The notes beneath the pieces were generated by a model. It was not told the DNA's origin. It did no database searches and saw only the letters and a list, made by a program, of their open reading frames with translations. Shown here one piece after another: positions 18,268 to 43,552 of a DNA stretch of 64,000 nt (positions are counted from its first letter, which is position 1; each line of letters starts with the position of its first letter). The position numbers and the translations under genes are program-made. The stretch lies in assembly GCA_047495785.1 (NCBI GenBank), contig JBLDXI010000020.1:372001-436000 (forward strand), written 5' to 3'. Origin of the DNA: Lepidodermella squamata (lineage: Eukaryota > Animalia > Gastrotricha).

Positions 18268-20687
18268 CTATTCTTTTGCAGTTTCAACCAGATCGCCGTT
18301 CAAGGTGGGCAAGTGCGAGTGCAGCAAGGTCATTCGCTGATGCTGTAGAGTTGGCGCAGGGGTCGCTGAACCACCAGATGGCGCCAGCGCCGTCAAGATG
18401 CATTTGCCGAGTAGCTGATCGATGCTTGCCATGTCGACGCCAGAGCTAGCAATCATTCGCTTCATATTGACATCTGCAACTCTTCTAACTTCGCCGACGA
18501 GAAGCAAAATCCGAGAAAATCTTATAAAAAAAGAATAATCATTAGGCTTAATTTTGCGACTTAATATTGCCGAGTGTTTTACCTTTCAATAAAATTTCGC
18601 GAGTTTCTAAGCTTTTCATGCTGCAAAAGCATCGCAATAATTTTGTTCTGTGCGATTTCAATGGCAACATCTGGACTATTTGGAGACGTTCCAGCGCCCC
18701 GGCCGATGATCGCTGAGAGAAAAGAATTTTGCGGGTTGATAGACTGCTTCTGGTTCAGCCGGTCAGAATCGGCCCAAAAAAGCATTATCATCTGCATTGC
18801 AGATAGCTCAGCGCTGTCGATATCGACTTCAACAATTCTGAAAAGTAGGAAAACAAAATATTACGCAAGTTTATAAATATAGATAAGCGGAAATTGTTAG
18901 ATTGTGATTAAAAGTTACCAACTTTTTAAGAATGCTCAGAGCGCTAGGGTCACTTGCGAGAAAAATGGCAAATGGCTGGGTACGGAAGGGAGAGTCGGCA
19001 GGTGCAATTAGTTGTATGAGATTGGCAAAGATGAGTTCGCGCCAGCTCGAGCGTAGAAGTTCAATTTGCAGCGACGGCGCCAGAAAGAAGAAGTCCGGAA
19101 GAGACTTGCACCACACAAGCACGCCTTCAAGCAGGCGAAAAATGATCTCCTTCGTTCCACTTGCTGCTTGCGGTGAAAGAGGCAGTACAGTCTCTGCTGC
19201 TGCCGCTGCCTCGTTGTTGCGTTGTTGCATCGCAGCCGCCGCCATCATCAGCGTCACAGCCTGCTGTTGGCGCTGATCAGGCGTTGCTCCAAGCAACAAA
19301 TGCGCCGGGTGTAAAGTTGAAGCTAAAGGTAGGGGTGAAGGTGCTGCTTCAAATTTGCGCCCACGTTGAGGTGTTTGGCGCTCGGACTTGACCATCTTCG
19401 CCGGCGGCAAGGACTCGTCGTCTTGGTTGTCGTTCACGCTGCAATCGCCTTCGTTGTCGCTGTCATCTTCCGATGCCTCGCCACGTGACGAACGAGTTCG
19501 TTTGGGTGCAACTTTGGCTGTTTCATCGCCTTCATTTGCAGCGCCCGTCGACGTCGACGCAAGCTCCGAGAATGCGACTGAAACAGCGCTCCCTAAGCGC
19601 AACATCACAACTTCGCGATCGGTGAGTTCGCGCAACTCAACATGCGCCGAATTTCTAGGCTGGCGCTCGTGCTGCACCGCTGTCAGGGCAAAGAAATCAG
19701 AAAAAAACGATTAAACCCGCAATTGATATCCTAATCCTGATTGATCGAGGCTTACCGTTTTTATTCATGCCAGTTTGAAGGCATTTCTTAAGCCGGCAGG
19801 CTTGGCACTGATTGCGGCGCTCCTTGTCCACGGTGCACGTGCCTGTACCGGCTTGGCACTTGTAGACTAGCCGGCGTCTGACCGAACGCTTGAAGAAACC
19901 CGAACAGCCATTGCAAGCAAATACTCCATAGTGGCGGCCGTTGGAAACATCGCCTGATAATATTAAAACAAAATTGATATCAAAATGAGTGAAGGCGGAG
20001 CAAAAAACGAAACAGACACCCGGAGATTTGAAAGAGAACGTGATATGTATTAAGCAGCGTAAAGTTTTACCGCAGATGCTGCATTGAATTGAATCCTGGC
20101 CGGGCTGTAGCGATCCACTTCCTCCGCTGCTCATGCCAGCGATTCCAGAGACGTCAACGATGCCGTCCAATTCGAGCTTCCCGCCACCGATCATCGTCTG
20201 CGGAATGCCCAACATGCTGTTCGGGCTATTACTCGGTGACACAGACGCTACTCTTGAAGGGTGCCGAATCCGCGACGGCGTCTGATTTCGACCGCTGAAC
20301 AGCTTATTAGACTGGTCAGCATTCTGACTGGCCAATTTCATCATGACATTGCGCGCCGATGTGAAATCACGGTCATCGCCAACAGTCAATCGAAGTGGGG
20401 CAGTTTGCTCGCCGTCCGATTCATCATTCCCAATGTCGACATCATCGCTCGTATCGTGAGCAACCATCGACGATTTGTCGCAATGATCTACGATTTTCGA
20501 TTGGAATAAGTCATCGCAAAACTTAGTTTCTAAGTAAGCTTTTACCTGAATAAGAGTTGTTGTCGTCATTGTTGTTGTTATTAGCGTCCGATTCATCTGG
20601 GGTTCGCGACGCTTCTTCTTCGTCGGTATTTTGCTGCTGCTTCATGAGTAGGCTGTCGATCATAAATCGCGTGGAAGAGCTCATCAT
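18268..20687 (-). CDS. NR2E3: Nuclear receptor NR2E3 (PNR/unfulfilled/fax-1 group)
   Basis: Zinc fingers CSICG|[32 protein letters not shown]…[12 protein letters not shown] with the NR2E3-type P-box CNGCSG, T-box AVQHERQPR, and a divergent LBD (WCKSLPDF…[13 protein letters not shown]…RFSRILLL). Confidence 0.85.
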
Positions 20688-22275
20688 TTTCGAGCGGAAG
20701 CTCTCTATAAAAAACGTTAGAAAATATTGAGGAGCAGTCAAGTTGCTGTCTTATTCGGGTGAACAGGGTGATGAGGTATGACTCGGCCGGCAATGCGGCG
20801 ATGAAGGGCGATGATACTAAACAAAAAGCAATTATCCGCGTTTAATCCGGTGGTACATGTTGCGAGTTTTGTTGGTTACAAGCTGATTAGGGTCACTAAT
20901 GCCATCAGGCGGATCGTTTATCGCGCCTGCGAGCGCGGAAATAGCGCCGCTGACTGCGCGCCCTCGGCGGTACGTGCGCAAATCGGCTTGACAACTCATG
21001 CGTGTGTGCGCGCACGCTCGTCGGCGCTTATTGCCTGCGCTCAGCCCAACTTATCCGTTGTCTTCTCGTAGTATACTTCGAGTACGGTTCGACTGCTGCC
21101 GCTCATCTATGCCTTTCAACGATTTTTGTGTGCGCAAATCGCCAATGTACGCGCAGACCAGATGCCGAAGATTTTGCGCGGCGTTTAGCGCACATATCGT
21201 TGGCGATAAGCATCTTTGGCTCGTTCAAATTACATGACAATCTCGTCTTAAAAATGTACCCTCGCCGTCGCTCGTCGCCGTGCTCGGCGTAATCGCGCCA
21301 CACTCATGGCCGAATGTCAAGTAGAATTAGCCGCGGCGCAATCAGCTGCGATTTGCGCTACTGCCGCATCACGTACCAAATTGCAGTATAAGTAGTTGTT
21401 TCGCCCTATTTGTATCTATCTCTCGTTTGTTACAATCATATCATCTTCATCATCATCATCGCCTTCAATACTTATCATCGCGCGTCGCCATCCGGTAACG
21501 TCGCCGCGGTCTTTTGTAAAAGGGCGCGACCGGAAATACATAACGGCCAAATTGTGATTTGCTCGTCGCGATTATTGAATGTTCAATGTCAAAACGAGCG
21601 TGTTAAAATTGAATTGCGGCCTGAAGGGCAAATTTAATTAAAAATTAAAAGCAAGATTCTTGATGATTATTTCTAACTTATTACGCCGTAATGAATCCGA
21701 AATTGATACGACACGGCAATAAAGGCTCATCATCGTATCTCCTTATCGCCGCGACAGCAGCTGTTGTCGAGGAAATCCGCGCCGGCCACCAACAATGAAG
21801 TTTTCGGCAAATCAAATTGTGGCGAAAACGCCTTTTATTCTTACGCCTCTGATCTGATAATGGCAAACTCATTGCCTCTTCGCCAGCTGTACGTTCTCGG
21901 TTCATTCTCGGCGTGATATCACAATCATGTCATTGATATACCGCGTGACGTAGGCGCGGCAAATCATCGAGTCCTAATCACATTTCGGCAACGTTTCCGC
22001 GCCACAAAACAGCGCCTCTAGATAAAAACAAACCTGGAAGATAACTAGGACTGACTAAATCGCTCAACGAAAGGACTCCAGAAATATTACATGCGAAAAA
22101 GGCAATCAAAGAGTTGCTTGCGCATATCGTTTCAAAGAATCAAAGAAGCACAATATCATAGGTTACCTTTTAATTGTTGCTCAAGCTTAGGGCATTGGGT
22201 ACACATTGGATACTACTGTTTTGGAGTCGAAATTATCTTGTTATAAGGAAGTAATTACTTATAATAATATATTGA

Positions 22276-25200
22276 TCACAGAGTCAGGTGATTAGAGCAA
22301 CGCGAGTCTTTAAATTCCTTCGGAAATACGCTAACTTTTGTTAATCTCAGTCCGTCTCGGAGTTTAACCATAAAATGGTCCTGGCTCAGGCGGCTGGTAC
22401 CATGGTGGAAGATAAGGGGGCGGCGCTTGCTGAAGGACAGGGCCGTTGTTTGGCGATAAATTATAGTAAACCTGCATTAGAATTTTACACTTAAAGAAGA
22501 AACGAATGTTTGGAAATAAGTAACCTTAGGCTGCTCAACAGGTGGAGTGGTCACATCTCTGCTCAAGAAATAAGGACCAGGCGGAGGATCGTCAGCTGGT
22601 TGCTCCTCTGCGAATCGCGTCTCAGAAGGGGACAGATTGTTGCCGCTGAATTGCGCTAAAATTCGCGATCGAACTATATTCAAACCAGGGAATAAGTGTG
22701 ATTATGATAGCTTACTGCAAATTCCTGTATCCCGGTTGCTTGGATCGCAAGTAAGACAAGTGAGACCAGGAGCACAAACGCGCTCACGCCGAACTCTTGG
22801 CCAGTAAGCAGACGACCATATCGTGCCAGGATACATGGAAAGAGCTATTCGCTCGGATGTGGAACATGATTCACCACTATTGACTGTATCGTATCGGCCT
22901 CGCGGTAGACACATACGCATCGACATGGTTACTGGATATAACGGGCCCAGGTATGCCCGCAATTCGACAGGCTCTGCATCATTTAAGCAGCTAAAAAATT
23001 TCGGAAAAATATAGCAGCAATAATTAAAAACCAGGTCAATGTTACCTGCAAACATTCTGTGCGCAACGTGTGGCCTGGCTATTTCCAGGGTAACAGTCTT
23101 CATCCGTTCGACACGATTCACCGATGAATTCTATAATGAAGACAAGAAATAAGAGATTATACACCCCTTTTGAGTAACTGGCTTACTATAACGGCATCGT
23201 TGAACTGACTGGTCGAATACTCCAGCTGGACATGCGCAAGTTTTGCTGGTAACAGAGCATTCCAAGCCTTGGATAGGGTTGCAGAGATCGCTCATTGAAA
23301 TACACGGCTCGCCGAGGCTTTTGATCGTAAAGCAGCTGTTGTCTCCATCCTTTAATAGAATAAATTCGCATTTAAAAGAAGGTTTTACTCAATTGGACAT
23401 TACCATTAGAGTTAGTGCACGAGAACGCATTCTTGCGCTAATAGCGTTCTGGAGCTCGGTTCCGGAGTTGGCACATTCAACACGGCCGAATCGACAAAAT
23501 GCACCCATTGGATAGCGCTCGTTACCGGTGATATTCGGATTCATACGCATGGCACAAGGCTCGCGAAGTCGCTTTGGAATCAGCTGCTGGCAACTGCCTG
23601 CATAGGCAACTTGTCCATCGGGGCAACGGCACGTACCAACCGGGCACGTCGGATTGAAGCCAGGGCTTATAGCGCACGATTGGCCGGTAAAAGGACACTC
23701 GCGATCCGACCTACATGTTCCCGAGCCTCCAGCATCGGAGTAAAACCACGGTAACTCGACTGTAAAAGAAAGGCATGAAGAAGTGTTATCCCAATGAAAA
23801 ACTTAATTCACGTTTGTTGTCGTAAATCGGTCCCACCGTTCTTTGAACGTATTGCAGAGCTGTAAAACAGGGTATTCATAAAACACGGACTTTGTTGATC
23901 GAATTATATTACGATAAGCCGTTGGAACTGGCGGAAGTGGCTCTTGGGTAAGGTAGCTGTTAGAACCTATAACGCGAGATTAATAATGACAACCAGTTGC
24001 AATTGGAAAACAAACCGATTTTCAAAGGTCTCTGGCAACTTGGCCACAGATCGCCTGGACATTGCATGCAGATTGAATCAGCACCGCATACTCGAATATA
24101 CCCGCCATAGCTAGATTCAGTCCATGGCGATAACGTGCAGTTCTGACCTGGATACTGATCAATATGCAAGTGGTAGATCGATTTTCTCACGCAGATCGGC
24201 ATCGACAGGTAGAGGTTGGAGCCGTCGACAATCGAAACGCCATCGGTGCGAAGTACGTCTGTTTTCGTGTGCGTAGCTGGGTCGCAAAGGCAGAGACCAC
24301 TGATGCACCTGGCTCCGCCTTCCCTTCGAGCCTCGCTGTAACTGCCAGCAGAATAGCAGTCGGCATCGACAGCGCATCGGTCGCCGTAAACTCTAGGAAC
24401 GCAGGTGAACTTGTTACGGGCAGCATCGCTTAACCAACGATATCCCATTGAACAGTTACAGCGTCCATTTCCCGCGCAAATCAACATCTTCGTATCGTCA
24501 CAAATTGCGATAACAGCAAGTTGGCGGTTATTGACTACGGCGGTGCGGGTCAAGTTAGCCGCACAAATTTCGCCATACGATATGATCATATTTACACTGG
24601 TGCGGGCATCCACAGTAGGCAAAACAACTAGCGCTGCCGTAGAAGGGCGGGCAGTTACAATAGGCATGCATGCGAAACCCGACCACTTGATGTAACAAAA
24701 GTTTAGCATTAGAAAAATAATGTAAAAAATCAGCTTACGGTGAAACCGAGCGTGCAGATAACACGCTTTGACAGCGGGTCGCAAAAAGCTGCGGTTGGGA
24801 AAACTTCCCACACAGTCGAGCCGATGCAAGTCGAATTAATCGTGAGGCTGACGAGCCGATAGCAGTAGCCATCAATCGGGTCCAGAACAGCTCCAGCTGC
24901 GCATTGGCAAACACCCGATCGCGCGCAGCCAGGTGAAAACTGTTCGGTCGAAATCGAGCATGTTGAGTTTGCGTCAAATCGGTTACAATCGTCGTCAGTC
25001 GAGCATCCACGACCGTGAGCTTTGCTCTTCAAACCCGATATATAGAGAGTTGGACCGCCGCTTCCTGAAGTGAATCAACACTCTAAATTAAACCATGAAA
25101 ATTCATTCGAAACTTACGGCATCGACCGAAACCTGGGCCAAGCTCACTCGCATCCTCTGGGCATTGAAAGCAACCAAGGCCTTCGAATCCGTTGCACCAA

Positions 25201-27195
25201 GAGTTGTCGGCCGGGTCGAGTTTGCAAGCGAGACCTTTGGCAACGTTTATCGAAGAACCACCTGGCACGCAAATATTGCGGACAATGATTGATGAATTGT
25301 TGTAGACGCCAGCTTGGGTTGCGATGAAACCCGAATCGCAGCCGCAACGTCCATTCACGCATGCTGTACCTCGGCTACTGTAAGTGCCTTGGCAATCCTC
25401 GTTTTTGGAACATCCATCGCCGAACTCACCTAAAATTATGATTTTGGATAAACAATTCTGGAGAAAGAAGAGAGAACCTACGTGGTTGGCAGAGTCCGTA
25501 TTTTGGATTAAACCACTGATTGGTTGAAGCGCAAGTACAGACTAATCCCTTAAAGGGCACAGAATTACAAGCCAGTCCGGGTCGACACCCGAAATCTCCA
25601 TTTGCCATCACCGTAGTCGCGGAGCAGTTTTCGCCAAATTCTCGATACCGCCAGACTGCGAAGAAGCCAGGCGTGAATACGCTAGCTGTCGGAAAAAACG
25701 CCGGAGTCGGTTGCGTTGAGAGAATGTACGAGACGAAAGATGGTCGGACGGACGAAAAAGCGGGAACTACTCGATAGCAGATTCCGTTGTAAAGCTAGAC
25801 GAGTAGATAGAAATTTTACAATCAAACTTACTAGAAAAAAGTAATTTTGTTTACAATCATTCCAACAGTGCAGTTGACAATGTTGTCGGGAGAGCAATAC
25901 GTATTGTTCGGCATCAACTCGTTGGCTGCATTAGTGCATGGCGATCCAATCGGGAGAAAAACATCTTAAAATTATTGAACGGAAAATGAAGTTGAGATAG
26001 GTATATAGAGCGCAGTTTTACATGGGCTGCAAATTCTGTTGGCGTCAGGAGCCATGTTGGGAATGCATGAGCAAACTCCGCGTCTGCAGGGCGGGTCCAA
26101 GAACCCCTGAGAGGCTGCAACCGGCTTGTCACAATGTTCGTTCGTACCACAGGCATAGTCGTCCAGACAATCGATTCCGAGCCGCGAGAACGGCTTCGGG
26201 GTCGTAGTTGGCACGTTGTAACGAGGAGTTGTCCTAGGTTGAACAGCGAGTTGGCACCGCCCCTCAAACGGCTGCAAACTATCATCGGGGCATCGAATGC
26301 AAACATTATCTCCCTGGCACAGCTTGTTATCGGCTGCGTTGCTGTACTTCTGGGCACTGACCGTGCAGACCGATCCGCTTGCTACATTTTGAGTCACATC
26401 TTTTGCTTGGCATATTGTACGAGAGAACGTTGATGTCTCGTTGAAATCGTAAATCGCCACTGCAACGTGATCTGCGTCACAAGCGCATCGCCCCGAAACA
26501 CAGGCGTAACCAATAGAAGCGTACACGCCCGAGGCACACTGTTCGTCTTTTTCGCAAGGATCGCCGAAATCACGTGGCCAGCAATCTTCGTCGGCTGTGT
26601 TGAAGTAACGCGTAGGATCAGCGCAAATGCAGCGAGAATTGGAGTCGCAAGTCAAATAGCTGAAAGATCCAACGCCGCCACAACTTCCAGTCGAGCAGTC
26701 TTCGCCAAACATATGAACATCCGTGTCTGGTACGCAGTTAGCTCCGCTGGCCTTGAAATTCGCCGAACAAGCTACAACGCTGTTGGTACAAGTTGCATAA
26801 TCCGGGTAAATTTCATTGGCGCTTGACGTGCAGGCAGACTGAAGACCCAAAATTACATCTTTTTTGGAGATGAGATTCTTTTACCGGGAAATGAATGAAT
26901 CCGAACTCATTACCTAATTCGCAGTTGCCTGATGAGCCTCGATGGAATCCTGTCAGACATGCACATTTCCCTGCCTGGCATCCGCCGCCGGCTATAAATG
27001 AGTATTTTTGGCAAAATTCATTGGTTCCGCAATCAGAGTTGGCCAAACAATCTTGTAAAATTTGAAACACGTTTCACAGCTTCGTTATACTTGGCTTTAC
27101 TAACCTGTTCCAACTTTGTAATCGGCCCTTACATTTCGCCCGGCGAAAACCAGAATGATAACTACAGAAGTGGAAAATTTTCCGATCATAAACAT
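22276..27195 (-). CDS. Secreted cysteine-rich EB-module/EGF-like repeat protein, multi-exon
   Basis: Signal peptide MFMIGKFSTSVVIILVFAG and repeated C-x-x-D-x-x-C…C-x-x-G-x-C-x-C modules across many exons. The 3' end is uncertain. Confidence 0.7.
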
Positions 27196-27779
27196 TCAAA
27201 TTGTTCGCGATTGAGGGACTTTTGAAAATTGAATGAGGCAAGTTTAAACTCGCTATATCGTGATGGAATGCACCAGAAGGCGTGCGATTATAATAGGCTA
27301 ATAAATCGGCGCTATCGCTCGGATACCTTGGCGACAAGCGCTATTTAGAACTTCTTTTGTTTGTTTGCTGTAAAATATTTTTGACGCAGCCCGGCAACCG
27401 CAGTGCGCCAAGCACGTCGAGGCCCGGCTCTCATGAAAAAACTCAGATCGAGTCAATAGGAAGTTCAGGATGTAGCACGCTAGTAAGCATCGATTTTCGT
27501 AAAAAATTATTCTGTTCGTTTTGAAATAAAATTAATTTATTCATAGCTTTGTTTTCAACAAGTAAAGTACTCTACAAACCGAGTTAAAGGCACTCTCATC
27601 TTCACCTGAGTGTTGATTGGAAAAACTGAAAAGTACGCTATATAATAATGTATCAATAACCAAAAAATGAAGGTTCATTGTTAGCAGATGAGAAATAGAG
27701 CACTAGATAAAATTTTAGAATTTCAGAAGAAAATAATTATAATTCGGCAAATTTTCACCGCCGGATTTATTTATTCATT

Positions 27780-30700
27780 TTAATCGTCGAGATCCAAAGG
27801 ATCCAATTCGCTGGTTGCCTTCTTGTTGCCGCTCTTAGGCTTAGCGCTTCCCCGCTCTATTAGATAACAAAATTACAACACTATTTTCTAGCATAATCAA
27901 AAAACAAACCGGGTTTGGCTGATGCTGGAGGGCTCGTCACAGGTTCATCGTCTTCATTGGGTGGGTCGTCGTCCTTAGCAGCTGAGGTTGGGCGGAAAAG
28001 GTTCGCATCGCCGCCGACACTCGCCGCTGATGATGGGCGGAAGAGGTTCGAAGATGCCGACTCGGGCCGAAGAGATTTCGACGAAGCAGGACGGCCCGAA
28101 ACCGGACGTTCATTGTCCTCGGCCATGCCCGGTAGATCAGGCTCGATACCCGGTTCGTCGTCTTCGTCATCGTCGGCTACATCAGCTGCGAGTGATCGCA
28201 CCGATCGGGCCGATTGCGGTTTCGCTGACGGAGCCCGAGGCGGAGGGTTGCTCGGCGCTGGCTCGGACTTGGGCATCATTTCCTTGTTGATTTTCACCTC
28301 AGCCGCTATATCAGCCGCCACGTCACCCTCCTCGTCCGAGTCTGGGAATTCTGGGAACAGAAGCTGCGGAGGAGGCGCCCAGCCCTCGCCACCAGCAGGC
28401 GGCTGGCTTGGGTCAGCTTTTCCGGGTTGTTGAGGGGGCGCAGGCCTACCCCGATTCTGCGAAACGGTCACATTTCTTAATTTGAAAAATCAAAAACGGT
28501 AAAAATTACGCCTGATGGTCTACGCGGATCTGCCGAGCCAGTAACAGCAGCTAACGAGCCTGGGCGCTGCTGCGTTATTTCGTCGGCAATAGCCGCTGCA
28601 TTGTCGCCATCCCTATCACAGACGTAAAGTTCGAAATCAAAATGAATTCGAAATACTCACTTGTCGAGGCACATCAGCTGACCATCAGGCCCGACAACAA
28701 ACAGCTTCTGGGAAAGATCGATGGGCGGAGGAGGGGCGGGAGCGCCGCCTACAGGCATCGGCATCGGCGCAGTTCTGACCGGGAAGCAGCAACTGCACGT
28801 CAGCAGGTAGTTTGGTTTGGCTAGACCGCGTTGCGCTGAGACGTACTCTCGAGAGTCCATGGCCACGATGTCCTGCGGCTCGATGCCGCCGGTTTGGTAC
28901 TCCTGAGACACGAATTCGTTGAATGTCATCTTCTTTTTGTCCTGCTCTTCGTTGTGAAGGACGAGGGCGAAGTAACGCTCGTAGATGTCGATGAATTTCT
29001 GCCATGTGATCTTGCCGGCCGGGTGTTGCTTGCTCATACAGCCAGCGCAGCACAAAATTCTGACTTCTTCCTCGCGAAGGCAGAACATGATGAAAATGAA
29101 AAATCCTTGAGAAGCGTTGAGAATAGCATAGCCGTAGTCGTAGTAGATTGAATCGTAGGAAATACTCAAGATGCCTAGAATCCACGTTCCAGTCAGAATG
29201 ATGAGAAGGATAATTAGAGCCCAGAATTTCTTCTTCGACAGCTGTAAAAAGTTACATTTAGACAAACTTTACCGCATTATTTTTTAACATGCCTCGAAAA
29301 TGACTTCGATTTTCGCGCGCTTTTGAACTCCGTACTTGAACTCGACTCCGTAGACTTCAGCTTGGCTAAATGATTTGATCTTATGGCCTTTCACTTTGTA
29401 AATAACCGGCGCGACTTTGATCAGCATGTACAGCGATAGAACCCCAACAATCATGAACGGAACGAAGAAGGCCCATTTTATTATGCCGTCCAAGTCCATC
29501 CAACAGGAATAGGTTGAACCGTACGAGTCGAAAAAGCCCCCGGCAGTAACTACTACCGTAATAAGAGGAACGGCGAAGCCAAGGCCGTAGTAGGCCAGGA
29601 GATTTTGCCATCCCTTTCGGAATTTTGTGACAAATCTGAAATACATTGCCATGGCGAGGGAGCCGATCAAAGAGAACGTGAGTAGGCCGAAAAAGTGTAG
29701 CATGATTGAAATTATGCGGCAGGTCATTGGGCTGACTGTCAACTTCGCACCAGCAAGAAGCAGGGCTTGCGTCATGCCGATCGAAAAACAGAGTAGCATT
29801 ATGCCAACGCGTTCAGTGCTGAAGCGACGAAGTTGAATGTAAATCAGCAGGGTGAGGGCGAGACAGAGAATAGACAGGGCGCTGCCACCAACAACAATTA
29901 CTGACAAGGTATGACAGGTTAAATCGCTCTTAATTTCACATAAAATACTAACCGTTTAGAATCAAAGCAGCCAAATAGTAGGAATCAGGGATTACTTCTA
30001 CCATTGAAACCGCGAAAATGGTCATGTGACTGCAACGGCCTGAATCAAAGAAGATAATTAAAACCGATTTCAAATATTCTGATTTCTTACATCGAACGTA
30101 ACCGAATCCAGTGCCGTCAGTTGAATTATAGAAAGTTGTTTCGCATCCCGAGTCCTTCGTGCGCCACGTTGGTCCATTTATGTAGCCGAAATCGTAAAAA
30201 GTACAATGAGGCTGATAATTTCCGGCCGGAGCTTGATAGATCGGAAACCAAATCGTCAAATAAACATTTGCTGGCATTTTTGGTATGTGAGGATTCGTTG
30301 ATATTGACATGACCCCAGAATTTATCAAAGCCGGTGGCAGTTTGTAATCGTCGCTTACGTACGTGAAGCTGAAACCTTTCGCGCGAACTGAAGCCTTGAC
30401 GTATTGCGACAGCGTCGTTTGATTAGCCGCTGCCTGTGTGCTGTTGTAGATGCTCGATTTGAACTTGGTGGCGTTCACGTAGCAGTGCGCGATCAACGGC
30501 TGGTAGGCGCCGGGGTAGGACGAACGGTCGACGGCCTGCGGGGGGAAACTCCAGTTGCCACACTGCATTGAGACGAACATAGCTGCTGTGTCTTTGTCTG
30601 ACATGTTGCCGATGAACACTTCGGTGCCAGACATGACATCGATATAGGTCAACTTGGATCGCTGGGTTTCGCAATCAGGGCTCAGCATAGATTGGAATAG

Positions 30701-33700
30701 GTCAATGGCAGCTTCGTCAACCGACAATAACCGAGTCAATGCTTCGAACTCGCTGCCTGGCTCTTAAGCGAAAACGAAACTGTCAATATAGAGTAATGCT
30801 GCATTTCAAAGATTACAAACCTTCAAGCGGAGGGGAAAGAGCCTCGCCAAGAACAGGTTGCGTCAGGTATTCAAAACGCTAAAAAACCCAAAAATAACGT
30901 AAAAAATATTTAGAAATTCGTAACTTTTTACCGAGTTGAAACCATCAGCACCAGTGCATTTGAAGTAAGTTCGCTTTTGAAGATCAGCCAGTTTCGCATC
31001 GACGTCGGTGAATAGATCAGCGGGAATTTGCGGATAGGTCATGTCTAAATTGGGAAAAAATCTGATACAGGAGACAGCTCGCACTGACAAATAATCGTAC
31101 TGTTGTCAAAGTAGCCCATTTCACATTCGGGAAAGTTGGCCATGAATTGACGCGTCAAATTGAATTCTACGCAAATTCGAATGTTAAATAAGAACACGAT
31201 CAAATAATGTTGGACTAACTTGTCTCCACAGGTCTGTTTGTGACAGGGTCGATTCGCAAAAATCTAAGATGAAAAAAATTAGGGCTCAGCAAAATTTCAC
31301 AGCATGAACTCACGGCCCAACAGTTGCTCGAAGGCAGTAGCACATGTATTTCCCATTTCGAGAAACAATACGAGCAGCAGCTTCTTCGCCAGTTGTGCTG
31401 TTTTTGGTCGAATACCCGGCCTAAATTTTTCAGCTTAATTAAATCATCAGTCAAATTTCCGCATGAATCGCAAACCTTGACTAAAGCGTCTGTTTGCCCG
31501 CAGGTACAAATATAACCGCGATCATACGGAATTAGTGGATCGCCACGTTTATTCTTCAGAAATGAGCTTCCAGATACAATCTTGCACTGAGGCGGAATTC
31601 GCGAAGCTGCAACGCATCCACCGCTTGGAATTTTTCGATAGCCTGGCAAGCAATAGCAGGTATGTGGTCCGCCCTCAGGATATTGACAAAGCTTTTGTTC
31701 GTAAGACACAGAAAAAATTGAATTAAAGCTATAGATTTGCTGTCTGAAGCTTACCTGTTCAGTGGTGCAGCTGCTATAGTCAGCTTGGCATTCGTTGTAA
31801 GTGTCTTGAAAAAATATTACAAATTTGGCCATTTTCGCAACTAGAATACTAAGTGATTACATGGGCACCCGCACTCGGCAGCAGCAGCGGTGTCATCGCT
31901 GGTTTCGCCATAAGTGCACCCCATTGGCACTCCCTGGAAATCGTTTGGATATTTGTAGTACCCGAGATTACAGGCGCATCTGAAAATCCCACAACGATAA
32001 TCGGCTGTATCCTTTCAACAAATCAAATTAAAACCGGAAATTGTTGGTCAACGAATCAGCAGAGTTATCTTCGTAGCAATGAGTGTTGGCAAAAGTAGTT
32101 CCACAGTATGAGCAATCTTGAGATGGGCAGAGACGCGAAATGTAGATGTTACAATTTGCACTCTGTGTTGCCCCGGCCGAATCACCGGGAGATCCGCAAC
32201 CTGAAAATAACAAAGAAAAATTGTTAACAGCTAATAATGGTCGAACAACGGGAAATTCACCTCCGCAAACATCGGTACCGCATAGGCACGATCGAGCCCG
32301 CGTTCGTTGGCCGCTGAAAATGCACGGCGTAGTCACCATCTGGAAACTACCTTTCGATGGCTTTTGACATCCTCCCCAAGGTCCCCAAGCAGACCACTTT
32401 GGCTGGTCTATTTAAAGCGGGGATATTACGAATTCATCATCGAAAGCAAGCAATCCTTACATTGACAATATTTAGCTGTTACTTGAGAGCAACCACTCGG
32501 ATTACAGCTGCTAATGCACTTGCGCCAACGTCGGGTCTGCGAGAAAATAAGAAATCAGTCTCAAGTACAATGAAGGTCACGAATTTTATACTTGGGAGCC
32601 AGGCGCGAGAACGCAGTCGGCCGTCCAGGAGGTGTACTGTTAGCAAATTCATAGGCAATAATGGCTCGTTCATAGTCATTTTTAAACACACCTTTCCATA
32701 AACACCGGTCGAGCAATTAGCAAAGCTTAGAGATCCGAGAACTGAAAAATGGAGCAATTGATCACAAGCCTAGATTATTTGGCTATTGATAAAATCACCT
32801 CTTCGGCAAACGAAAGGCAGCGTCGAGTAGCAGCTTTTCGTTACCCAACCGTTGCCAGATGTACCATTCATAAATACGCATGTGTCGTTTGAAGCCGGTA
32901 AGTTAGGAGCAATATTTTTCGACCAATCTAAGCGGAACAACTTCAGATTATCTCATAAACGTGTAGATAAGTATCAAGATTTACATGTAACTGCTGGTGG
33001 CATCAAACTCTTCGCAGTATTTATCCAGTTAACTACGCTGCCAGAAGTATCGAATTCAGATTTAACGCCTATCCATCGCTGTTTGCTTTGAGAGGAATAA
33101 TTGTTATATTGAATGACAAGTTAATGCGGTTTTCCCTCGAACCTATTCCCGAAAATTCTCATCATGAAATCGTTCTCCTCATTGTTGTCCGGAACAGCCA
33201 GTGTGGCTGAGTTGGCAGCGCACCAATTTTGCGCAGCGAGATACGTCATGGCATTCGGATTGTAATAATAGCATCGCAACTATTTGCAGAGGTATGTACA
33301 AGCACCTGCGAAGTGAAATTTTTTATTTTATTACCTTATACTCAAACCACGTCAGGGTAGGATTTGGGGCAGACTGTAGCGGCGAGCAGTAAGACATTTG
33401 ACAAACTACGTAAGCGGTTTGGGAGCATGGTATGCTGGTCAAGTAGTAATTTGCAGGTAAATTTTGGCCAGCGTTGCCATTCTGATAAACGCCTGAAAAG
33501 ATGAAACATAGATTCAATTGTTACTGCTGGTCTTGGGATGAATTTACCGCAGTAACCAACGGTCGGTGTTCCGAAGTTATTGGGAAACCCCACAGCGTTG
33601 TAGAAGGTCTTGAATGTCGTACCATCTGCGATGTAACCGAGCCAAATGGTATATCTAATGGGATCGGCCAATTATAGTGACATTTTAATTCAGCTTTGTT

Positions 33701-34077
33701 AGCTTACCCGCTAGCAACATTCGCAAGCATCGACAATTCATACTACGATGAATGGTTTGTATAGCAAACAGTCAGCTCTAAATTTTACTCACATTGTCAG
33801 CAGGATAGGCTATTCTTGCCCCGTAGCCCAATTGACCACAAGCATCGTCTAAAATAATCAGTGACCGTTATTTAATCCACCATGGCTGAATTCATCTTTC
33901 ATTACCAGCATCACTCCAAGACATCGCATTAGTAGACAATAATTGATAGCATCGATAATCAGTTTCGTTCCATCCGGCCGGACAGTAGCTCATTGCGTAA
34001 GGCCCTGCTGCCGCTGAGTGGAGCAGGTAACTACCGCAAATCACAGCCGACCAAATTAAAATGGTTAATTTGATCAT
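27780..34077 (-). CDS. Adhesion GPCR (2 C-type lectin, 2 TSP1, EGF, GAIN/GPS, 7TM, long acidic/Pro-rich tail)
   Basis: Signal peptide, CPAGW..RCYQL, LRCYYY..AQNWC, WSAWGPW..RTRARSC, CYCLPGY, GPS CTFYD..W..SGC..RCSHMTIFAV, and secretin-family 7TM (SYGSTYSCWMD, ILTGTWILG, ILNASQGFFIFIMFCL). Confidence 0.88.
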
Positions 34078-34497
34078 TTCACGTTCACTTCTGTCAGGAA
34101 AAATGGTTTCATCGCAAAAAACACGTAATAAATTCGTCGGCTCGAATATTGGATAGAAACACTGCATGCACGTATGGCTTCATCAATTATTCATGGTTTC
34201 TTTGTTTGATACGCAAGGTGTACAGCGCACCTAAGGCGTCGTCAACGCTGCGAATAACATTTGGTAGGCATCGATCAAATCAGCGGTAGAGCGACGGCAT
34301 CCCACCAATTCGTTCGCCGCGGTGAAACCTGACCTTTATCGAATATTGTTCAGCCAGCATTAATTTTTCGCCCGTGTCGACGCAAGTTGGATTTTTACAG
34401 CACAAAAACATTAATTGTGAATAATACAAAACATATGAAACATAAACATTCGATTTTATTATTATTTGGCACTCTGAAGAATCACTTGCAGGAAACT

Positions 34498-34719
34498 TTA
34501 TTGAAAATTTACAATCCAGCGGCCTTTTAGTATACGACGCAGTAGAACTAACTTCCCGCCGACCGTCATTAAACGCCGATCCAGGCCGATGCTGTTTCGT
34601 CGACGAAGGTAACTTGGTCGATAAGTCCTTCGACTTTTAAATCGTACTATTTCGGTAGTAGATTCTGTCACCATGCGGCTCAAGAAGGAAAAAGAACTCC
34701 GCAGCATAGCCAAACTCAT
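34498..34719 (-). CDS. MRPL34: Mitochondrial ribosomal protein L34 (bL34m), intronless
   Basis: Presequence plus RTYRPSYLRRRNSIGLDRRLMTVGGKLVLLRRILKGR, the L34 pattern. Confidence 0.85.
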   Translation of the reverse strand: MSLAMLRSSFSFLSRMVTESTTEIVRFKSRRTYRPSYLRRRNSIGLDRRLMTVGGKLVLLRRILKGRWIVNFQ

Positions 34720-34869
34720 ATTTGCTCGTTTTAAAATATCGCCCTATTAAACAAAATAACTGTAAATTCGTTGTAAACGAAACGAAAAGAACGAAAAGCT
34801 TTTTATTTTGTCCTTTTTTCCAGATAAAACGAAAGAAAATGTACAATTTGGAAGGTAAGAAAAAAGGCG

Positions 34870-35663
34870 CAGGCACAGCACGAAAAAGCGCTTGTCCGGG
34901 ACAGTGCGCCACTCATAACACCGGACGGGCACATACTGAAATTATCACAAGGAGCGGAATTATCAGACACAGCAGAAGACAGAAGGCTAGTGATTAGCGG
35001 TAGGACGGGAGAAGAAGAAACAAGGAAATAAGCAGGAAGGGGAAGAAGAAAGAGGAGAGAGACTAACATTGTGGGACAGGGAGCGGGCCGGGCGGCAGGC
35101 GAGCGTTGAGAAGGAAGACAGGTGACTTCACAGGCGGCGACGCGGAAAGCCGAACATTCTCGATGTCTTCGCGAAGCGGCAGCACAAAGCGGACGACGTT
35201 GTCGGCATAGCGGCACTGGACGGCTTGTAAGTGCGAGGACAGACTGGGCAGGCGACAGCGCTGCTCCAGCGCACTAACACGAACGCGATCATCGAGACGG
35301 ACATGGAGAATGGCGCGCAGACAGTTATTCTGAAGCACGTCTAGGCGGCGGAGCTGTGTCTTCGCAGCAGACGCAAAGGAAACGAAGCCGAAGGTGGCGA
35401 TGGAACGGACGAGCGCCAGGTAGGCGGTGCGGCGCCACCGGAAAGACAGCCCTGGCCGGCTAACAACCGAGCGGAACCACAACAGATTTTCCCACAGCGA
35501 TGGAGCACATGGTCGATATGGGGCTTCCAGGTCAACTTCTCATCGAACAGAATGCCCAGAATTCGAAGTACAGAGACTTGCGGGATGACAGTGCCTCCAA
35601 GCACGAGCCTCACACCGGGGGGACGACGGGAGAATGCGACAACCTCACTCTTGGCGGCGTTGA
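34870..35663 (-). mobile_element. 5'-truncated non-LTR retrotransposon fragment (RT C-terminus and 3' UTR), frameshifted
   Basis: NAAKSEVVAF…LRILGILFDEKLTWKPHIDHV, then in another frame AYLALVRSIATFG…LDVLQNNCLRAIL, typical LINE ORF2 post-RT motifs, followed by a pyrimidine-rich 3' UTR. Confidence 0.85.
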
Positions 35664-37955
35664 CTAGATAACAAAACGTATTTGTTTATTAATGTGGTGT
35701 AGTAGGCCACGCAGCACGGTCACAACTATGAGGTTATGAACCGGCAGGGTGCCAACGCAAGGGGCACAGCCGGCGACTATGAGGTCACCAGCCGGCGGGA
35801 CAAATCTGTGTGATTGACCAAAAAAGAGCATCAGTGATGTCAAAAAGGTCATGCCCAGGGTAACCCTGTTAGGCGAAGCACGTCGGTTGTCGGCGTTATT
35901 TTATTTTTCTTGTAATTAGATACGGCCAAGAATAACCTGGAGACCTGGTAGCACCAGGGTAGGTTGCGGCCAGAGTGGCCCGAGGTCTATCGTGTGTTGA
36001 CCACACGGTAACACTGGACTCCTCTTGGGAGGCCACATCCCCGGCTCCGTAGAGGGAGGTAGTGTCATCATCGGGAGGTGAGAAACACCCGTTGCTAAAC
36101 CGGCGATCTAGGGATCTATTTTCCGAGGAAATTCACTACGTATATAACGTCCCGACACCGTATTACCGAGACGCAGAGTCAGATTAATATTACGCTTGAG
36201 TCCTCGGTAGAGGGGGGCTGCCGCACTAGTGTAAGTGAGCGCCAAGCGCGGTTTGAGCGGCAGTTGAGGCTGCCAGGCGGGTCGACTAGAGTACCAAGGC
36301 CAGTCCTTGCCAGTGGTAGACGTCAGGGTGCGGTCAGGGTGCGGGGCAATGGAAGATTAGCTTCGAGTACGCATCTTCTTCCAGCCTTAGTTGCTGGCGA
36401 CGTAACTCGCCGACTGGAGACGAGCAGAGTTGCCATCAGCTTCATTGTCACCTTCATCGTCAGCGCTGTATATAGTATATAGGGTCTTCCCGGCAGCATA
36501 GCAGAGCAGCGGAACCATGGGCGTTAAAGAGCTCCCATTCATTCATTTCAAAGGGTCTCCGCCTAAAAAAAGCACGTTTTACGCGCTCTTTTATTCAAAT
36601 TTTATTTTGACATATGATCTAAGTCAATAATAAAATACAATTTAATATCTAGTTGAAATATATTATTATTCTATGACAAATGGTTTTTCACAAGTCCTTC
36701 TCCATCGGCAGCTTTCAGCTTTCGGCTTTCAGCGGTCGTAGTAGTAGCAGTAGGGGTAGTAGTCTAGTGGTGTTCTTCTTGTTTTCCACCGTACCGCGTA
36801 CCGTGTATAGACCGTCCGCAGTCCTGCGCCGCCCGTCTGCCGCTATTTTTTCACTTGTGTTTACCTTTTCTGTCTTATTTATCAGCGTTGAAATCTCTTA
36901 AATTGCGTTTATTTTGTTGGAGAAGCCATTCGTTAACTGCAGCCATTGTAGCCTTAACCCAAACGGCAAGGCTTTTTTGATTGTTCATTTTATAAAATTC
37001 GTATATTGACGCTTGTAAACTGTAAACGGCAGTTGGGGATCTATTTATATGTCTCTAGTGTGTTTCTAGTGTGCGACAACTATATTTATCTTGTCCTAAT
37101 TATGATCGAGCGATATTTAGGGAGTATTACGCTCGTCTGGAAGCTGAATTTACGAAATAGTGCAGATAAATGTTGGGCGATCTGCTTTGATTGTGAACTG
37201 ATTTTTGGGTTTTGTTAGAACCGAAAATGGAAGCATTACCGTGCTTCTTGCTTATATATGTTTTCTTGTTTGCTGCTTTTGGATATTTTTCTGGATATTG
37301 ACGAAGGCTATTTATTGGTTATTGAAGCCGGCAGCCTTGGCTTACTAGCCGACTGATTTATGATTTATGGCACCAATCATCAATCTATACGTTGGAATTT
37401 CGTGCATGTTGCAGATTGGAAGTCGAAACAACTTTCAATTACAAGAAGGAAGGATTTCCCATTATTCATAAATCTACCCTATGCTCGACTTTGGGAAACG
37501 TCATTCATACTAATTTGCTCGGCGTACTCGACGGGTGCGGCATTCCACATGATTATGAGCCCTCCGAGGGTGTCAACTTATAATGTCTAAGATGTAGCAC
37601 GCCAATTGCTCGAACTTAATCAGCGCTGAGACTCCATTCCCATCGAGGCTCCACGTTTAATATTCCACATGTAGCGCTGCAATTTTTCCCGACTTCCCCC
37701 TGAAGCGGCTCATAGTTCAAAGCGAGAAAAATGCTGAATTGGTCGCGTTTAATGTAGCTGTCTTGGAGGTCATTACAGTCCACTGCTGTTGATTTCCCTT
37801 GAAAGCTCAGCACGTTGAGAGATCTCTTATTATCTCGATATATTCTTGTTCTAGTATTTCAACTACTATGTTATCATCTACTATCCTTTTGAAGTTGATA
37901 ATCATATGATGAATTCCCGGTAGGATGTTGATATGATAATGAGAAGGCGGAGATT

Positions 37956-40900
37956 ATGCGTATAACGGGGATTTTGGTAATTCACGTTTCCTTGTTTCTG
38001 GTTAGTTATGTCTATTTTCCGTGTATTCACTTTTTCTTATGTTCTCATCTTTTTATCTAGGCGGGAAACGTGATAACCACCATCAGAGGCCAGGCACAAT
38101 CGTATCCGACTGGCTTGGTAAGTTATTTGTTAACTTATTGTTATTTGCCATGATTGCTTTTTGTGTGTCAACATTGAGCATTTCTTGCGAAATGATGCGA
38201 TTCTTTAGAAACAACAAAAACAAGTATTTTCACACTTCCAAGGCGCTGTTGTATTAACGTTGCTTTATAATAAGCCAACGGAGACTTATGTGCTTCGCAT
38301 TGTCACTTGATAGGACATTGATTTTCAATACCAGCAGGCTATTCGCAAAACGTCCCCGCGTTTACAGCTCCTATTTTGTTACATAGTGGATATTTTATTT
38401 GGTCTTCATTATGTACATGTATGTAATGCGCGGCTCATCCTGTTGGCAAACAGCAGAAAACCAATCTTTGCGACTAGTTGTAGACTATGAATAAATGCTG
38501 GGACGAGGAAGGAGCCAATAGTACTTGTTTATGCCCGCCGATCTTTTAAATTCATAATGGCATGTATAAGCTAAGCGTCTGCTGCCTTTCGTCATTGCCG
38601 TTTGCTGAAAAATTTCTACTAACACGCAGCAGTTAGTTGTCCATATGGTTATTATGGGTGGCGCACTGTTTGTGGCTGATCTAGCTGGCGCCCTAAATGC
38701 GATCGATGTCTCTTTCTCTGGGGCACGGCAATGTGACAGCGGACGTTGCCTGTAAGCTCTGTATTATAACGCACATCCGCTCCGAAATTGGTTGCGCCGT
38801 ACTGAGAACAGAACTCTTCATTAAGGGTGATAATTTGGCTGCTATCTAAGGATACATGCGCGCTACGAATTTTTACGGCCGGTCATTTATTTATCGCCTT
38901 GAGTGTTGAATCGCAAACTATTTGCGATGGTCATTCGCTAAATTTTTTATACTATTTATCCCGTCGTATATTCAATTTTCAGTTGGGAAAACACAATTAA
39001 GGAGGGTTTAGCAAAAAAAAATTGTGATGAAAATTTATGTGACCGCGCAGTGAGGCGAGCTGCCATTAGATCTACTTATTATGGACTAACGAATCCGAAA
39101 ATTGTTCATTTTTCAGGACACCGTGATGATAATGAGTGCTAATGTTTTTTTTTTGCTTTTACGTTATTATAGCGTGACGATGAAGACTTCGCATCGCAAG
39201 GCAGCGGCAGTGGCTCGGAACCGCCGGCGGTGGAAACTCCGATGCAGAGCTCAGGATCAGGTAAGAAATGATCGCCGGTGCCGCAGAATTTCTCGTAATC
39301 GATCGTTTTCGTTGGCCAATAAGTGGGGCTAATAGTCGTGTTTTTATTTGCGGACATGCAAATGTTATTATGATTTGACGATAAGACGAAAAAATAATGC
39401 ATTGTGGAAGATTGAAGCACCCATTGCTTTAAAATGTAGACGTCAAAGGTGTCAGTCCATTCCTGTGATAGTAGGCAATTTATGTTTATTTTAATTTGGT
39501 TATGATTTAATTTTAACAGTTCACTGTAGGAAATCGCACATTTTTATCCTTGAACTGAAACTATCCTTTAGAAATCAAACACGCCATGCACATATTAATT
39601 AACCGTCCACTTCTAAAAATAGTAGTTACGCCGAAAAATCATAAAAAAACGACTAATATGTAGTGAACTGTCGTTTTTAATATTTTTTATATTTCCTGTT
39701 GTGTCATGTGTCTACCAACTTCCCTATTACTACTTGCTGTTGTAGAGCCATTAGAACCCGCCACAAAGGGATCTGAGGATAACCAGAGGATGGAGGTGGC
39801 GACTACGCCCGTGCTGATTTACTCTACGCCAACCACGCCCAGCTCAACGCCCTCAACAAGGCGGACCTCGACCCCCTCGACGACTACCTCGACCTCGACG
39901 ACCACAACAACGACGCCGTTGCGAACGAGCACCACGTCGGCGCCGTCCTACTTCGTAGTTACCGGTGTTGAAAAACAAACAACTACGGGTATCACCTCGC
40001 AGCTCGACGACTCGTGTCTTCCAGTCAGTTATATTCCGTCTTACCCGTGGCCGGTCAAGATCTATTGCAATCGCGAATCAAATTCTCTGCGAGCCGTTTG
40101 TCTAGTCGGCCCGCCACCCCAGACGTGCTACTGCGTCGACCCCGTCGGAGGCAGCATTCTCTACGATGTGGTTTACCCCAATTGCGGCCCAGGTTTGTTT
40201 CGAACGGCCTCCTCACCCGTCACAGGGTTTCCACAACTATCTACTAAAATTACTAAAAAAAACCTCATTTATTTTTTTGTGCTTGCTCTTTCACATGCAT
40301 GCTTTGAATGTTTGTTTGTTGAATGTTCGTATAATTTAAAATTGCGCACGATTTCCTTGCCTGAGCACTTTGATCGCGGTGTCGTCCTTTTCAGCCTTCA
40401 TTGTTCATGTTGTATGTGTTGTAGTCAATTTTCGTGGCCACGAGAATGGATTGGGCCTCGTTCAAGTTGAATTCAATTTAAAAGTCATCTGGCGTTTCAT
40501 TAAATAATTCCCCCATTGTTCGCTTGTTGAATTGAATAATTATTGAGGGAAGTGGCCCTAGCGCTGTCAGTTGAACCGTCATGTCTCGCTCGCTCGCTCT
40601 CTCTCGACAGGGTTTCCGTCTCTTTGCGCGGCGCGTGTGCTTCGAAGCTGCTCGTTAATTTTATATAGGGGCCTACCTGTAAGGATAAGTGTAGTTATAG
40701 CTGCTATCTGGCCTTGTGTGAAATTTCACTAAGCCGCTTATGTCACCATGAGTGACGCGTATATTACATTTCCTAGCGGCCTGGTATGTATTTTGCCGTT
40801 GATAATTATCATCGCAGCCGGATCTTGGTGCACCTTTGAGCTGCGAAAGTGACATAACGACGCGTTAAAACAGTTTGCGCGCATACAGCGATAATATAGG

Positions 40901-43552
40901 CTCGGAAATTGATGGAAAAAGGTGTTAGAGGGCTGCCGCAGTCGTCGCGCGTAGTTAAGGTAGTAGCTGTAGTATAGTAGTGATATTGTTATTTAGATCT
41001 GGATGTTTATTATTGATTTGTACGCATGGCAGCGTGTGGTGCGATATAATAACAATAGATTCGCGACGCGGCATCGTTTTTGCGCGCGAAATCCGCATTT
41101 GCTTGATTGCGAATCGCGGCGGCGAAACGTTGGCGATGGATTTTCTATGGATTTATGTTCGTGCCTCGCGCTCTTGGTCATTTGTCATGTGGAGAGCAGG
41201 CGTGTGTGTTGCGTGTGTGATTTTCAAGTGCAAACTATGCGCCGATTTATTGAACATGCCGATGAAGTTGTAATAATAATAGTAATAGAGAGACACAGCG
41301 AGAGACATGCCGAGCTTGTTTTAATGAAGACTGTAAACAAACGGCGGCGGCTTTTGGCGGCGAAGGAATAACATATAAAATAATAATCAGGTCCGGCGAT
41401 ATGCAATTAACCGGTGCACGAGTAAACAGCAAATCTTTTGTCTTCGGTGTTGGCTTTACTCTCGAGGCATGCTTACTTTTCGGATGGATATATCATAACC
41501 CATCAGCGGGATTTTCTTATTGTCCCACGGACGTGTCATGCGAGTGATTGCCGAGAGATGCTAAGGGCGAGAAACACGTTGGCAAGGTCACATTCGAGTT
41601 GTGTGAGTGAAGGTGTGCGTGTGTGTGTGGTGATGTTTCATTGATGAAAATGATTTGAAAAAAAACCGACGATGAAATGAGCGTTGAAAAAAATCTTTTA
41701 AAAAATTACCCCATTTTCCTCGAATTTCTCACAAAACGATCATTATTGTTTTATTGATTTATTGAAATTTTCTCACAGTGACGCGGACCACACCCATTGC
41801 CCCTCTTCAGCCAAATCCTACAACGACGCAGCGTGCGAAACCGCCGGCGAAAACCACGCCGACTGTTGCACGGGCACCGTCGACCACACCGCGGCCAACA
41901 CAGAGGACGACCTCGACACGACCGGTTCAACCGACCCTCCAAACAACGACGTTCGAGACGTCGAAAATCGTAAGTGCTTTCCCGCTCGAGTGCGTTTTCG
42001 ATGCAAATAGCGATAAAATAATAAGTAACTCGATATTAACAAAGATGTATATTTTTGTAAGCTGAGCAATCGAGCAATGATGATGTTCATAATCGGCGCT
42101 TGATTTTTCCATTTAATTGTTGTTGCTATTAAGCCGCTTGTAACACACGGCCGGCAATGGCGCGATTTCTTATCGGTGCGCTTTATTTCATCTAAACAAT
42201 GTTATTATTTGGCGTTTGTGTTTACGATTGAGCTACATATATTATGCCCATTTTCTACGCGTGCTACATTCTGCTCAACAGCGGTAATAAGTAGATGCCT
42301 GCGAGGTGAAGACGTCAGAACATTCTGTCTAGCTCGCGGGCGCCGGCGCCGCCTGCCCCTCATTCAACGCGCGTCGGAACCTGGTGCGGCCGCGGCCAGG
42401 TATACCTATGCTTGATGCGTGTCTCGCGTTGTTTGTGGGCCGGCCACAGCGATTCAGTGGAATAATTAGACATGCCGTTCGTATTCACCTTATTCGCTGA
42501 TATAATACATGCCTCTACTTAGCTGCGGCTTCGGATGGGCCGGTTGCTCCGTTGCAATGGTAATAACGCGCTCTTTATCGTATGTTTGTCCGATCGTGGC
42601 GTTTCCCCACGAGATGTTATTGTTGTTATTATTACTAAGCAGTCGGTTGTTTGTAAATGCGTACTTCATAATGGGTATCATACCCCTACCTCAGCGCCAT
42701 TATTTTCGCGTATTATTCGGCGACCATGCATACCTGCTTGCGTAACGGGTCACGTCTGAACCGACTGTCGAATGGCTAATAATTAGCACATGCTTCAGTG
42801 TTGTATTATTTCGGTAATATGGACCTGCCGCCCGATGGCCAGACATCGTTACCTGTGGCGCCTTCACGCTTGCTGCTCGTAGTGCACTTGCCGCGGTCAA
42901 TTTGTAGCCTCGGAACCCCGTCGCGCTTCATCTCATCAAAGCGGCCTTTTCCCGCCGCCCGCCGCCACAGCCGCTTAAATCGATCGCATTTCACGCAGAG
43001 CGATTGTCCGATAATGTGTAGATCTTGTCAAGTGTAAACTCGATTGCTCAAAAATAGGAAGAAAAAAACAAGCGCGCGGCTTACACTTTATTGTTCCGGT
43101 AAATACTTCGACCGTGCTCATAAATAATTATGCGCGCAGCCATTTGTCGCTTTAATGCCAGTATTGAATATGAACAATGAGTGACTGCACTGACTGAGTG
43201 TTTTTTTCGTCTCCGCAGGATCAAGAATTATTGGAGGCGAGGGCGGATACCACAAAGAGTAAGCGGATACCGATGATGAAAAGGAAAAAGAAAACTAAAC
43301 GAAGTGTTAATTGCTTTTTCGACAGGTTGGGATCAAGGAGTTCCTGTTATTGCGACTTTCATGGGCCAGCCCGGCCTCTTGGCCGCCATTATTTGCGGCG
43401 CTGTCGTGGGCCTGCTCACCGCCGTCCTCCTCGTCATGTTCCTCGTCTACCGCATGCGGAAAAAGGACGAGGGCAGTTACGTGATCGAAGAGCCTTCGAA
43501 ACGTGTGCCGCTTGTCCAACCCTACGAAAGAACTCGGGAATACTACGCGTGA
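37956..43552 (+). CDS. SDC: Syndecan; predicted exons 37956-38000, 38061-38117, (39117-39122), 39173-39260, 39746-40192, 41780-41969, 43220-43259, 43326-43552
   Basis: TM GLLAAIICGAVVGLLTAVLLVMFLV, C1 YRMRKKDEGSY, PDZ tail EYYA. Upstream exons splice in frame: signal peptide MRITGILVIHVSLFL|AG, Ser-Gly GAG sites DDEDFASQGSGSG, Thr-rich mucin stalk. Confidence 0.9.

Follow-up and report, generated by a model that had tools for sequence, protein, structure and literature searches.

The gastrotrich Lepidodermella squamata possesses a syndecan gene in which a 447-nt exon, designated here as exon B, encodes a mucin-like, Thr-rich stalk followed by a segment with six Cys residues. Judging from its sequence, we consider it slightly better than an even call that this real syndecan exon combines a mucin stalk with a strongly diverged, thyroglobulin type-1 (TY)-like knob held by three disulfides. 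Positions are those of the window, the whole stretch of 64,000 nucleotides that was analyzed. Syndecan ectodomains are regarded as rapidly evolving spacers that bear GAG chains and have no folded modules (PMC1464127 and PMC8061687); a description of a folded ectodomain module was not seen in either paper, and the word "cysteine" does not occur in the former. In the literature searched, we found no paper that joins syndecan with a TY architecture, and the three papers in which syndecan is mentioned together with "thyroglobulin type-1" are about SMOC and CCN proteins. A six-Cys module is unusual for a syndecan, and the present case, which comes from one genome of an unsampled lineage, should be regarded as a lead. 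If the TY-like knob is true, it would represent a rare folded interaction or protease-inhibitor module grafted onto the family, as well as a TY domain so divergent that current profiles no longer detect it.

Exon B and the syndecan gene around it

The exons of the gene and the two parts of exon B are the following, all on the + strand.

39173–39260, + strand: exon A; an acidic stretch, then a Ser-Gly repeat that provides candidate sites for heparan-sulfate attachment; phase 1 at its end; GC 0.62
39746–40192, + strand: exon B; 447 nt, phase 1-1; encodes the mucin-like Thr-rich stalk and the six-Cys module
39748–39996, + strand: Thr/Ser/Pro-rich part of exon B, mucin-like and probably O-glycosylated, as judged from the translation
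40015–40185, + strand: six-Cys module from Cys1 to Cys6, 57 aa; divergent TY-like candidate
41779–41969, + strand: exon C; a further Thr/Pro-rich segment of the stalk, the second; phase 1 at its start and phase 0 at its end; GC 0.61
43219–43258, + strand: exon D; short juxtamembrane segment of 13 codons and 1 base; acceptor ccgcag/GAT, donor AGA/gtaagc
43326–43552, + strand: exon E; transmembrane helix and cytoplasmic tail; stop codon at 43550–43552

Read from the sequence, exon B is bordered by the acceptor ...ttgtag/AG at 39745/39746 and the donor CAG/gtttgt at 40192/40193. It consists of 2 bases, 148 codons, and 1 base, which add up to 447 nt, and its stop-free translation runs from a Thr/Ser/Pro-rich stretch into the six-Cys segment; by our own estimate, the chance of an open frame of 148 codons is about 0.001. 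The GC content of exon B is 0.57 (GC3, 0.65) and resembles that of the other syndecan exons (0.58–0.62), whereas the flanking introns have values of 0.34–0.44. Given that GC3 falls from 0.65 to 0.32 exactly at the donor (40192) and that the upstream flank has a GC content of only 0.34, coding appears to begin at 39746 and to end at 40192. Exon B and its introns were found to be single copy in own-genome protein and DNA searches. The mucin-like part gave weak low-complexity matches only when compared with Pfam, for example, to Mucin (E 1.9).

The neighboring exons fit exon B on both sides. Exon A (acceptor tattatag/CGT, donor CAG/gtaaga) ends on one codon base, and exon C (acceptor ttctcacag/TG, donor ATC/gtaagt) opens with two. 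The initial annotation had described a 447-nt, in-frame exon of phase 1-1, and the borders, the open frame, and the phases of the neighbors all agree with this description; the start that it gave for the downstream exon (41780) was off by one, as the AG at 41777–41778 places this start at 41779. Taken together, the sequence indicates that 39746–40192 is a genuine coding exon of the syndecan gene, beyond what chance would produce.

The identification of the gene as a syndecan gene, which had also been claimed, is borne out by its last exon. The region 43328–43549 matched the Pfam Syndecan family (PF01034; Pfam cut-off, 25.2 bits) with 83.4 bits and an E-value of 1.1e-23. It also scored 82.8 bits in a genome scan with PF01034, in which it was the sole strong syndecan match in the 121 Mb (151 contigs) that were searched. 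Exon E contains the C1 motif RMRKKDEGSY, and its C2 C-terminus is EYYA instead of EFYA. Exon A encodes an acidic run and then S-G-S-G-S, which is the typical context for heparan-sulfate attachment, and glycanation at these sites is predicted only. The protein is thus like the members of the syndecan family (PF01034; Drosophila Sdc and C. elegans SDN-1) in its transmembrane helix, its C1 sequence, its C2-type C-terminus, its N-terminal acidic Ser-Gly GAG-attachment exon, and its single gene in the genome. It is unlike them in the EYYA end and in its ectodomain, which contains a six-Cys module that is probably folded. The Thr/Pro-rich spacer is comparable to the mucin-like region of vertebrate syndecan-3. 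One syndecan gene per genome is also what has been described for invertebrates (PMC8061687).

The genome scan returned a marginal second PF01034 match (25.7 bits) on another contig (C48:1241347–1241451, + strand). It covers the transmembrane and C1 part only and may stem not from a second syndecan but from a different membrane protein whose juxtamembrane motif resembles that of syndecans.

No convincing signal-peptide exon was detected upstream of exon A in scans of the + strand from 31801 or 20001 to 39172. The exon that encodes the signal peptide of the syndecan may be located further upstream or may be atypical. An adhesion-type GPCR gene occupies 28657–31832 on the minus strand, upstream of the syndecan exons. 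The first syndecan exon may lie beyond this gene, in which case the GPCR gene would be nested in a large first intron. Overlapping ORFs at 34803–35482 (minus strand), likewise upstream of the syndecan exons, resemble, as judged by eye, the C-terminal portion of a reverse transcriptase from a non-LTR retrotransposon.

The six-Cys module compared with thyroglobulin type-1 repeats

All sequence searches and folding were carried out with single exons or with the module. The six Cys residues of the module enclose loops of 17, 10, 8, 1, and 19 residues and include the motif C-Y-C-V-D-x2-G-x2-I. The underlying sequence, C-Y-C-V-D-P-V-G-G-S-I, fits a C-W-C-V-type motif followed by x3-4-[SG] and is unique across the six frames of the window. 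In TY domains, disulfides connect Cys1 with Cys2, Cys3 with Cys4, and Cys5 with Cys6. We aligned the module by MAFFT with ten canonical TY repeats encoded elsewhere in the genome (alignment A1), which were validated as TY by the finding that the A1 profile matches thyroglobulin, saxiphilin, p41, IGFBPs, EpCAM, and Trop2 in the PDB. The six Cys residues, together with a Val and a Gly, are located in invariant columns, and the module keeps eight of the ten positions that are invariant among the A1 repeats; its six Cys residues also match the invariant Cys columns across 12 aligned TY sequences. The Cys2–Cys3 loop has exactly 10 residues, the same as in every TY repeat of the genome, and all four long loops are within or next to the TY length ranges.

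The residues between the Cys positions also carry some similarity. With the Cys residues fixed, the other residues of the module fit the TY columns better than permutations did (z 3.8, p 0.0006, for an alignment optimized on the real sequence), and nearly all of this signal came from V-D..G..I. When a local HMM was made from the genome's own TY repeats, the module scored only 6.5 bits; 9 of 2000 shuffled sequences attained this value, as did 29 of 2000 in which the Cys residues were kept in place. In a protein-language atlas, every match shown for the module was a TY cluster, with values of 0.82–0.84, which are in the "lead only" range of the tool (<0.9); no usable match was left in the atlas when the PF00086 clusters were excluded. 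The atlas "recognition" value of the module was 2543, which exceeds the level reached by 91% of known-family proteins. No family other than TY gave a signal for the module. EGF, cystine-knot, Kazal, Kunitz, WAP, trefoil, and CysD domains were compared by cysteine pattern and rejected because of a misfit in loop lengths or in the position of C-x-C.

The initial annotation had proposed a TY domain and had suggested a comparison with Pfam Thyroglobulin_1, which turned out negative. With this profile (PF00086; gathering cut-off, 20.6 bits), nothing was obtained at E ≤ 10 for exon B or for a 65-aa sequence covering the module. A six-frame scan of the genome detected 20 TY repeats on contigs C28, C3, and C34, and exon B was not among them. 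A phmmer search of the PDB returned chance gp120 matches only, without any TY chain, and hhalign against A1 gave a probability of 24.5% over 13 columns only, which correspond to the CxCVD..G..I block. The PROSITE-type TY signature before Cys3 is [SG]-x-[FYW]-x3-Q-C. In the module, the Gly, the aromatic residue, and the Gln of this first-half signature are replaced by Ser, Ser, and Val, respectively; Ser is allowed at the [SG] position, whereas the aromatic residue and the Gln are absent. In the genome's own TY repeats, G, Y, and Q of the signature are invariant or nearly so, and Gly is found at the [SG] position in all of them.

Compared with the TY family (PF00086; the p41 invariant-chain fragment, IGFBP C-domains, saxiphilin, EpCAM/Trop2, testican, nidogen, and SMOC), the module is similar in its six Cys residues, its matching loops, and C-[YW]-C-V-D-x2-G-x2-I. 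It differs in that it falls below every sequence threshold, is without G-x-[FY]-x3-Q before Cys3, and has a Cys1–Cys2 loop that is rich in Pro and aromatic residues, not helical. In addition, its Cys3–Cys4 loop contains 8 residues, while that of the genome's own TY repeats contains 4.

AlphaFold2 predicted a four-strand, generic beta-meander from the single sequence, with a pLDDT of 66. Foldseek/VIA searches with this model gave generic beta-meander or WD40-blade matches and no TY match; the former were dropped as indicators of identity, being uninformative at a pLDDT of 66. With a TY-guided alignment (A2), the pLDDT was 47. In a Foldseek search with the TY-guided model, p41, IGFBP-4, saxiphilin, thyroglobulin, and Trop2 ranked first, with values that were non-significant and biased by the alignment (E 1.2–5, TM 0.26–0.37). 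The AlphaFold check thus placed TY chains at the top, non-significantly, for the TY-guided model, and it provided no confident fold with or without the TY alignment. The TY assignment accordingly holds for the Cys framework, the second-half motif, and the atlas clusters, and it does not hold for the Pfam score and the first-half hallmark; the AlphaFold2 models decide it neither way. The assignment was to be abandoned if the segment neither scored nor folded as a TY domain, and these results come close to that outcome.

We also searched for relatives of the module. A phmmer search against 1.84 billion protein representatives identified no genuine relative; two matches were rejected as spurious, one being the translation of a repeat array and the other a PKD-repeat protein. 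A scan of metagenome contigs revealed no relative of the module, and a word-indexed protein search with the reference ORF 39706–40467, covering proteins of 140–444 aa, gave no candidate. In own-genome protein and DNA searches, the module's locus alone was recovered, with no paralogue. A profile search with the genome's TY repeats, which was performed to enlarge the alignment, added two short proteins only. The best public match of the neighboring ERAL1-like housekeeping gene is 37% identical, as expected of an unsampled lineage, and syndecan ectodomains diverge very fast (PMC1464127); therefore, the missing relatives say little about the age of the module or the constraint on it. Exon shuffling, by which the module had been supposed to enter the gene, was not supported by these data. 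Stalk and module are encoded by one and the same exon, the genome holds no paralogue of the module, and the locus is single copy.

Possible role of the module and alternative explanations

The sequence itself shows the exon anatomy, the identity of the syndecan, the Cys framework, and the motif; we infer the TY homology of the module, its folding, disulfides, and function, and its splicing as follows. Exon B encodes part of an extended, probably O-glycosylated Thr-rich stalk, in which a compact module of ~57 residues is placed between two mucin-like segments; three disulfides within the module most likely join its six Cys residues. Read as a diverged TY domain, the module keeps the Cys framework of TY together with the motif of the second subdomain, C-[YW]-C-V-D-x2-G-x2-I, but the hallmark of the first subdomain, G-x-[FY]-x3-Q-C, has been lost, and a Pro/aromatic-rich Cys1–Cys2 loop takes the place of the usual helical one. 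A type-I membrane heparan-sulfate proteoglycan would in this way present, on its glycosylated stalk, a knob made rigid by disulfide bonds, and the knob would add a protein-binding site to the syndecan core beside the GAG chains. By analogy with TY proteins, protease inhibition or ligand binding by the module is possible.

Because the phase of exon B is 1-1, leaving it out preserves the reading frame, and a cassette-exon isoform that lacks exon B is possible. The donor of exon B, gtttgt, is the weakest among the four of the gene, the others being gtaaga, gtaagt, and gtaagc. The symmetric phase and the weak donor may be taken as hints only of alternative splicing. It appears improbable to us that the gene represents a hitherto undescribed type of syndecan, in which the mucin stalk of the core protein bears a functional TY-type knob that inhibits cysteine proteases or traps a ligand and that is switched in and out by a frame-preserving cassette exon. 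If such a functional cassette is true, it would provide the syndecan with a binding or inhibitory activity that is independent of GAG and can be regulated.

Testican/SPOCK is a proteoglycan that has both GAG chains and a TY domain, in addition to Kazal and EF-hand domains, and the type-I membrane proteins EpCAM and Trop2 have ectodomains that include a TY domain. In functional terms, these proteins are analogous to a core protein that bears GAG chains or resides at the cell surface and carries a TY knob, and the L. squamata syndecan, if its knob is TY-like, would parallel testican in combining GAG chains with TY and EpCAM/Trop2 in combining a membrane protein with TY. However, they belong to unrelated families, and none of them has the syndecan transmembrane/cytoplasmic region.

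The main rival to a TY-like knob, which we consider somewhat unlikely, accepts exon B as a real exon of the syndecan gene and assumes that the module is a lineage-specific, small disulfide domain outside the TY family, whose motif and loops are convergent or coincidental. The silence of the Pfam TY profile, the restriction of detectable similarity to ~13 residues, the missing first-half hallmarks, the want of a confident TY fold, and the empty search of 1.84 billion representatives are all in line with this explanation. On the other hand, a coincidence would have to account for four long loops within or next to the TY ranges, including a Cys2–Cys3 loop of exactly 10 residues, and for an atlas that sees TY alone while other families give no signal. 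Very improbable, in our view, is the absence of any autonomous fold, where the Cys residues would make intermolecular disulfides (covalent syndecan dimers or matrix links) in a disordered ectodomain. Such an arrangement would be consistent with the low confidence of both AlphaFold2 runs and with the generally fast-evolving, unstructured nature of syndecan ectodomains (PMC1464127), but the even number of Cys residues, the compact span of 57 residues, the domain-like spacing, the C-x-C motif, and an atlas recognition beyond the level of 91% of known-family proteins argue for a folded unit.

The remaining alternative concerns the exon itself. The segment might not be spliced into syndecan mRNA as modeled and might instead be a nested unit, a retained-intron product of a 254-codon ORF, or a decaying pseudo-exon. 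The ORF in question (39706–40470, + strand) begins at an ATG that precedes the acceptor by 40 nt, has a short, hydrophobic, signal-peptide-like beginning, and runs 278 nt beyond the exon B donor into a hydrophobic stretch. It is thus open across both splice sites, one of which is the weakest donor in the gene, and no upstream signal-peptide exon was found for the syndecan. Nevertheless, the drop of GC3 at the donor and the low GC content of the upstream flank coincide with the modeled borders, both phases fit the adjoining syndecan exons, and the Thr-rich character carries on into exon C. Hydrophobic peptides, moreover, are the expected translation of an AT-/pyrimidine-rich intron. Given the break in composition at 40192, ORF 39706–40470 most likely arose by chance from intron sequence rich in pyrimidines and AT, with a nested, intron-retaining, or alternative-start product as a minor possibility, and we regard it as quite improbable that exon B is excluded from the syndecan message in one of these ways. 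The reading of exon B as a syndecan exon with a mucin stalk and a diverged TY-like knob is hence the one that we favor.

Neighboring genes and canonical TY repeats elsewhere in the genome

Exon B is surrounded by metazoan genes, namely those for MED15, an ERAL1-like GTPase, a C4 nuclear receptor, a secretin-family GPCR, a C2HC zinc-finger protein, and GMP reductase. The window also contains genes for two EB-module proteins and for a 2-oxoacid dehydrogenase (E2) acyltransferase, probably pyruvate dehydrogenase E2. The MED15 homologue (225–2453, + strand) is encoded by a single exon of 742 codons and has the KIX and central domains as well as an uninterrupted poly-Gln stretch of ~30 residues. 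Two adjoining Cys-rich ORFs of ~290 aa are located at 23960–24829 and 25972–26850, both on the minus strand, and match the EB module (PF01683; cut-off, 24.3 bits) with 20.4 and 27.8 bits, respectively. They are probably tandem paralogues that encode a secreted Cys-rich protein.

Canonical TY repeats occur as arrays in long open frames at C28:347591–348852, C28:375177–376429, C34:1345946–1347201, and C3:978417–978786, where they match PF00086 with up to 44 bits. The arrays at 375–376 kb of C28 and at 1346–1347 kb of C34 are nearly identical to each other, and this near-identity marks them as the result of a recent duplication or as uncollapsed haplotypes.
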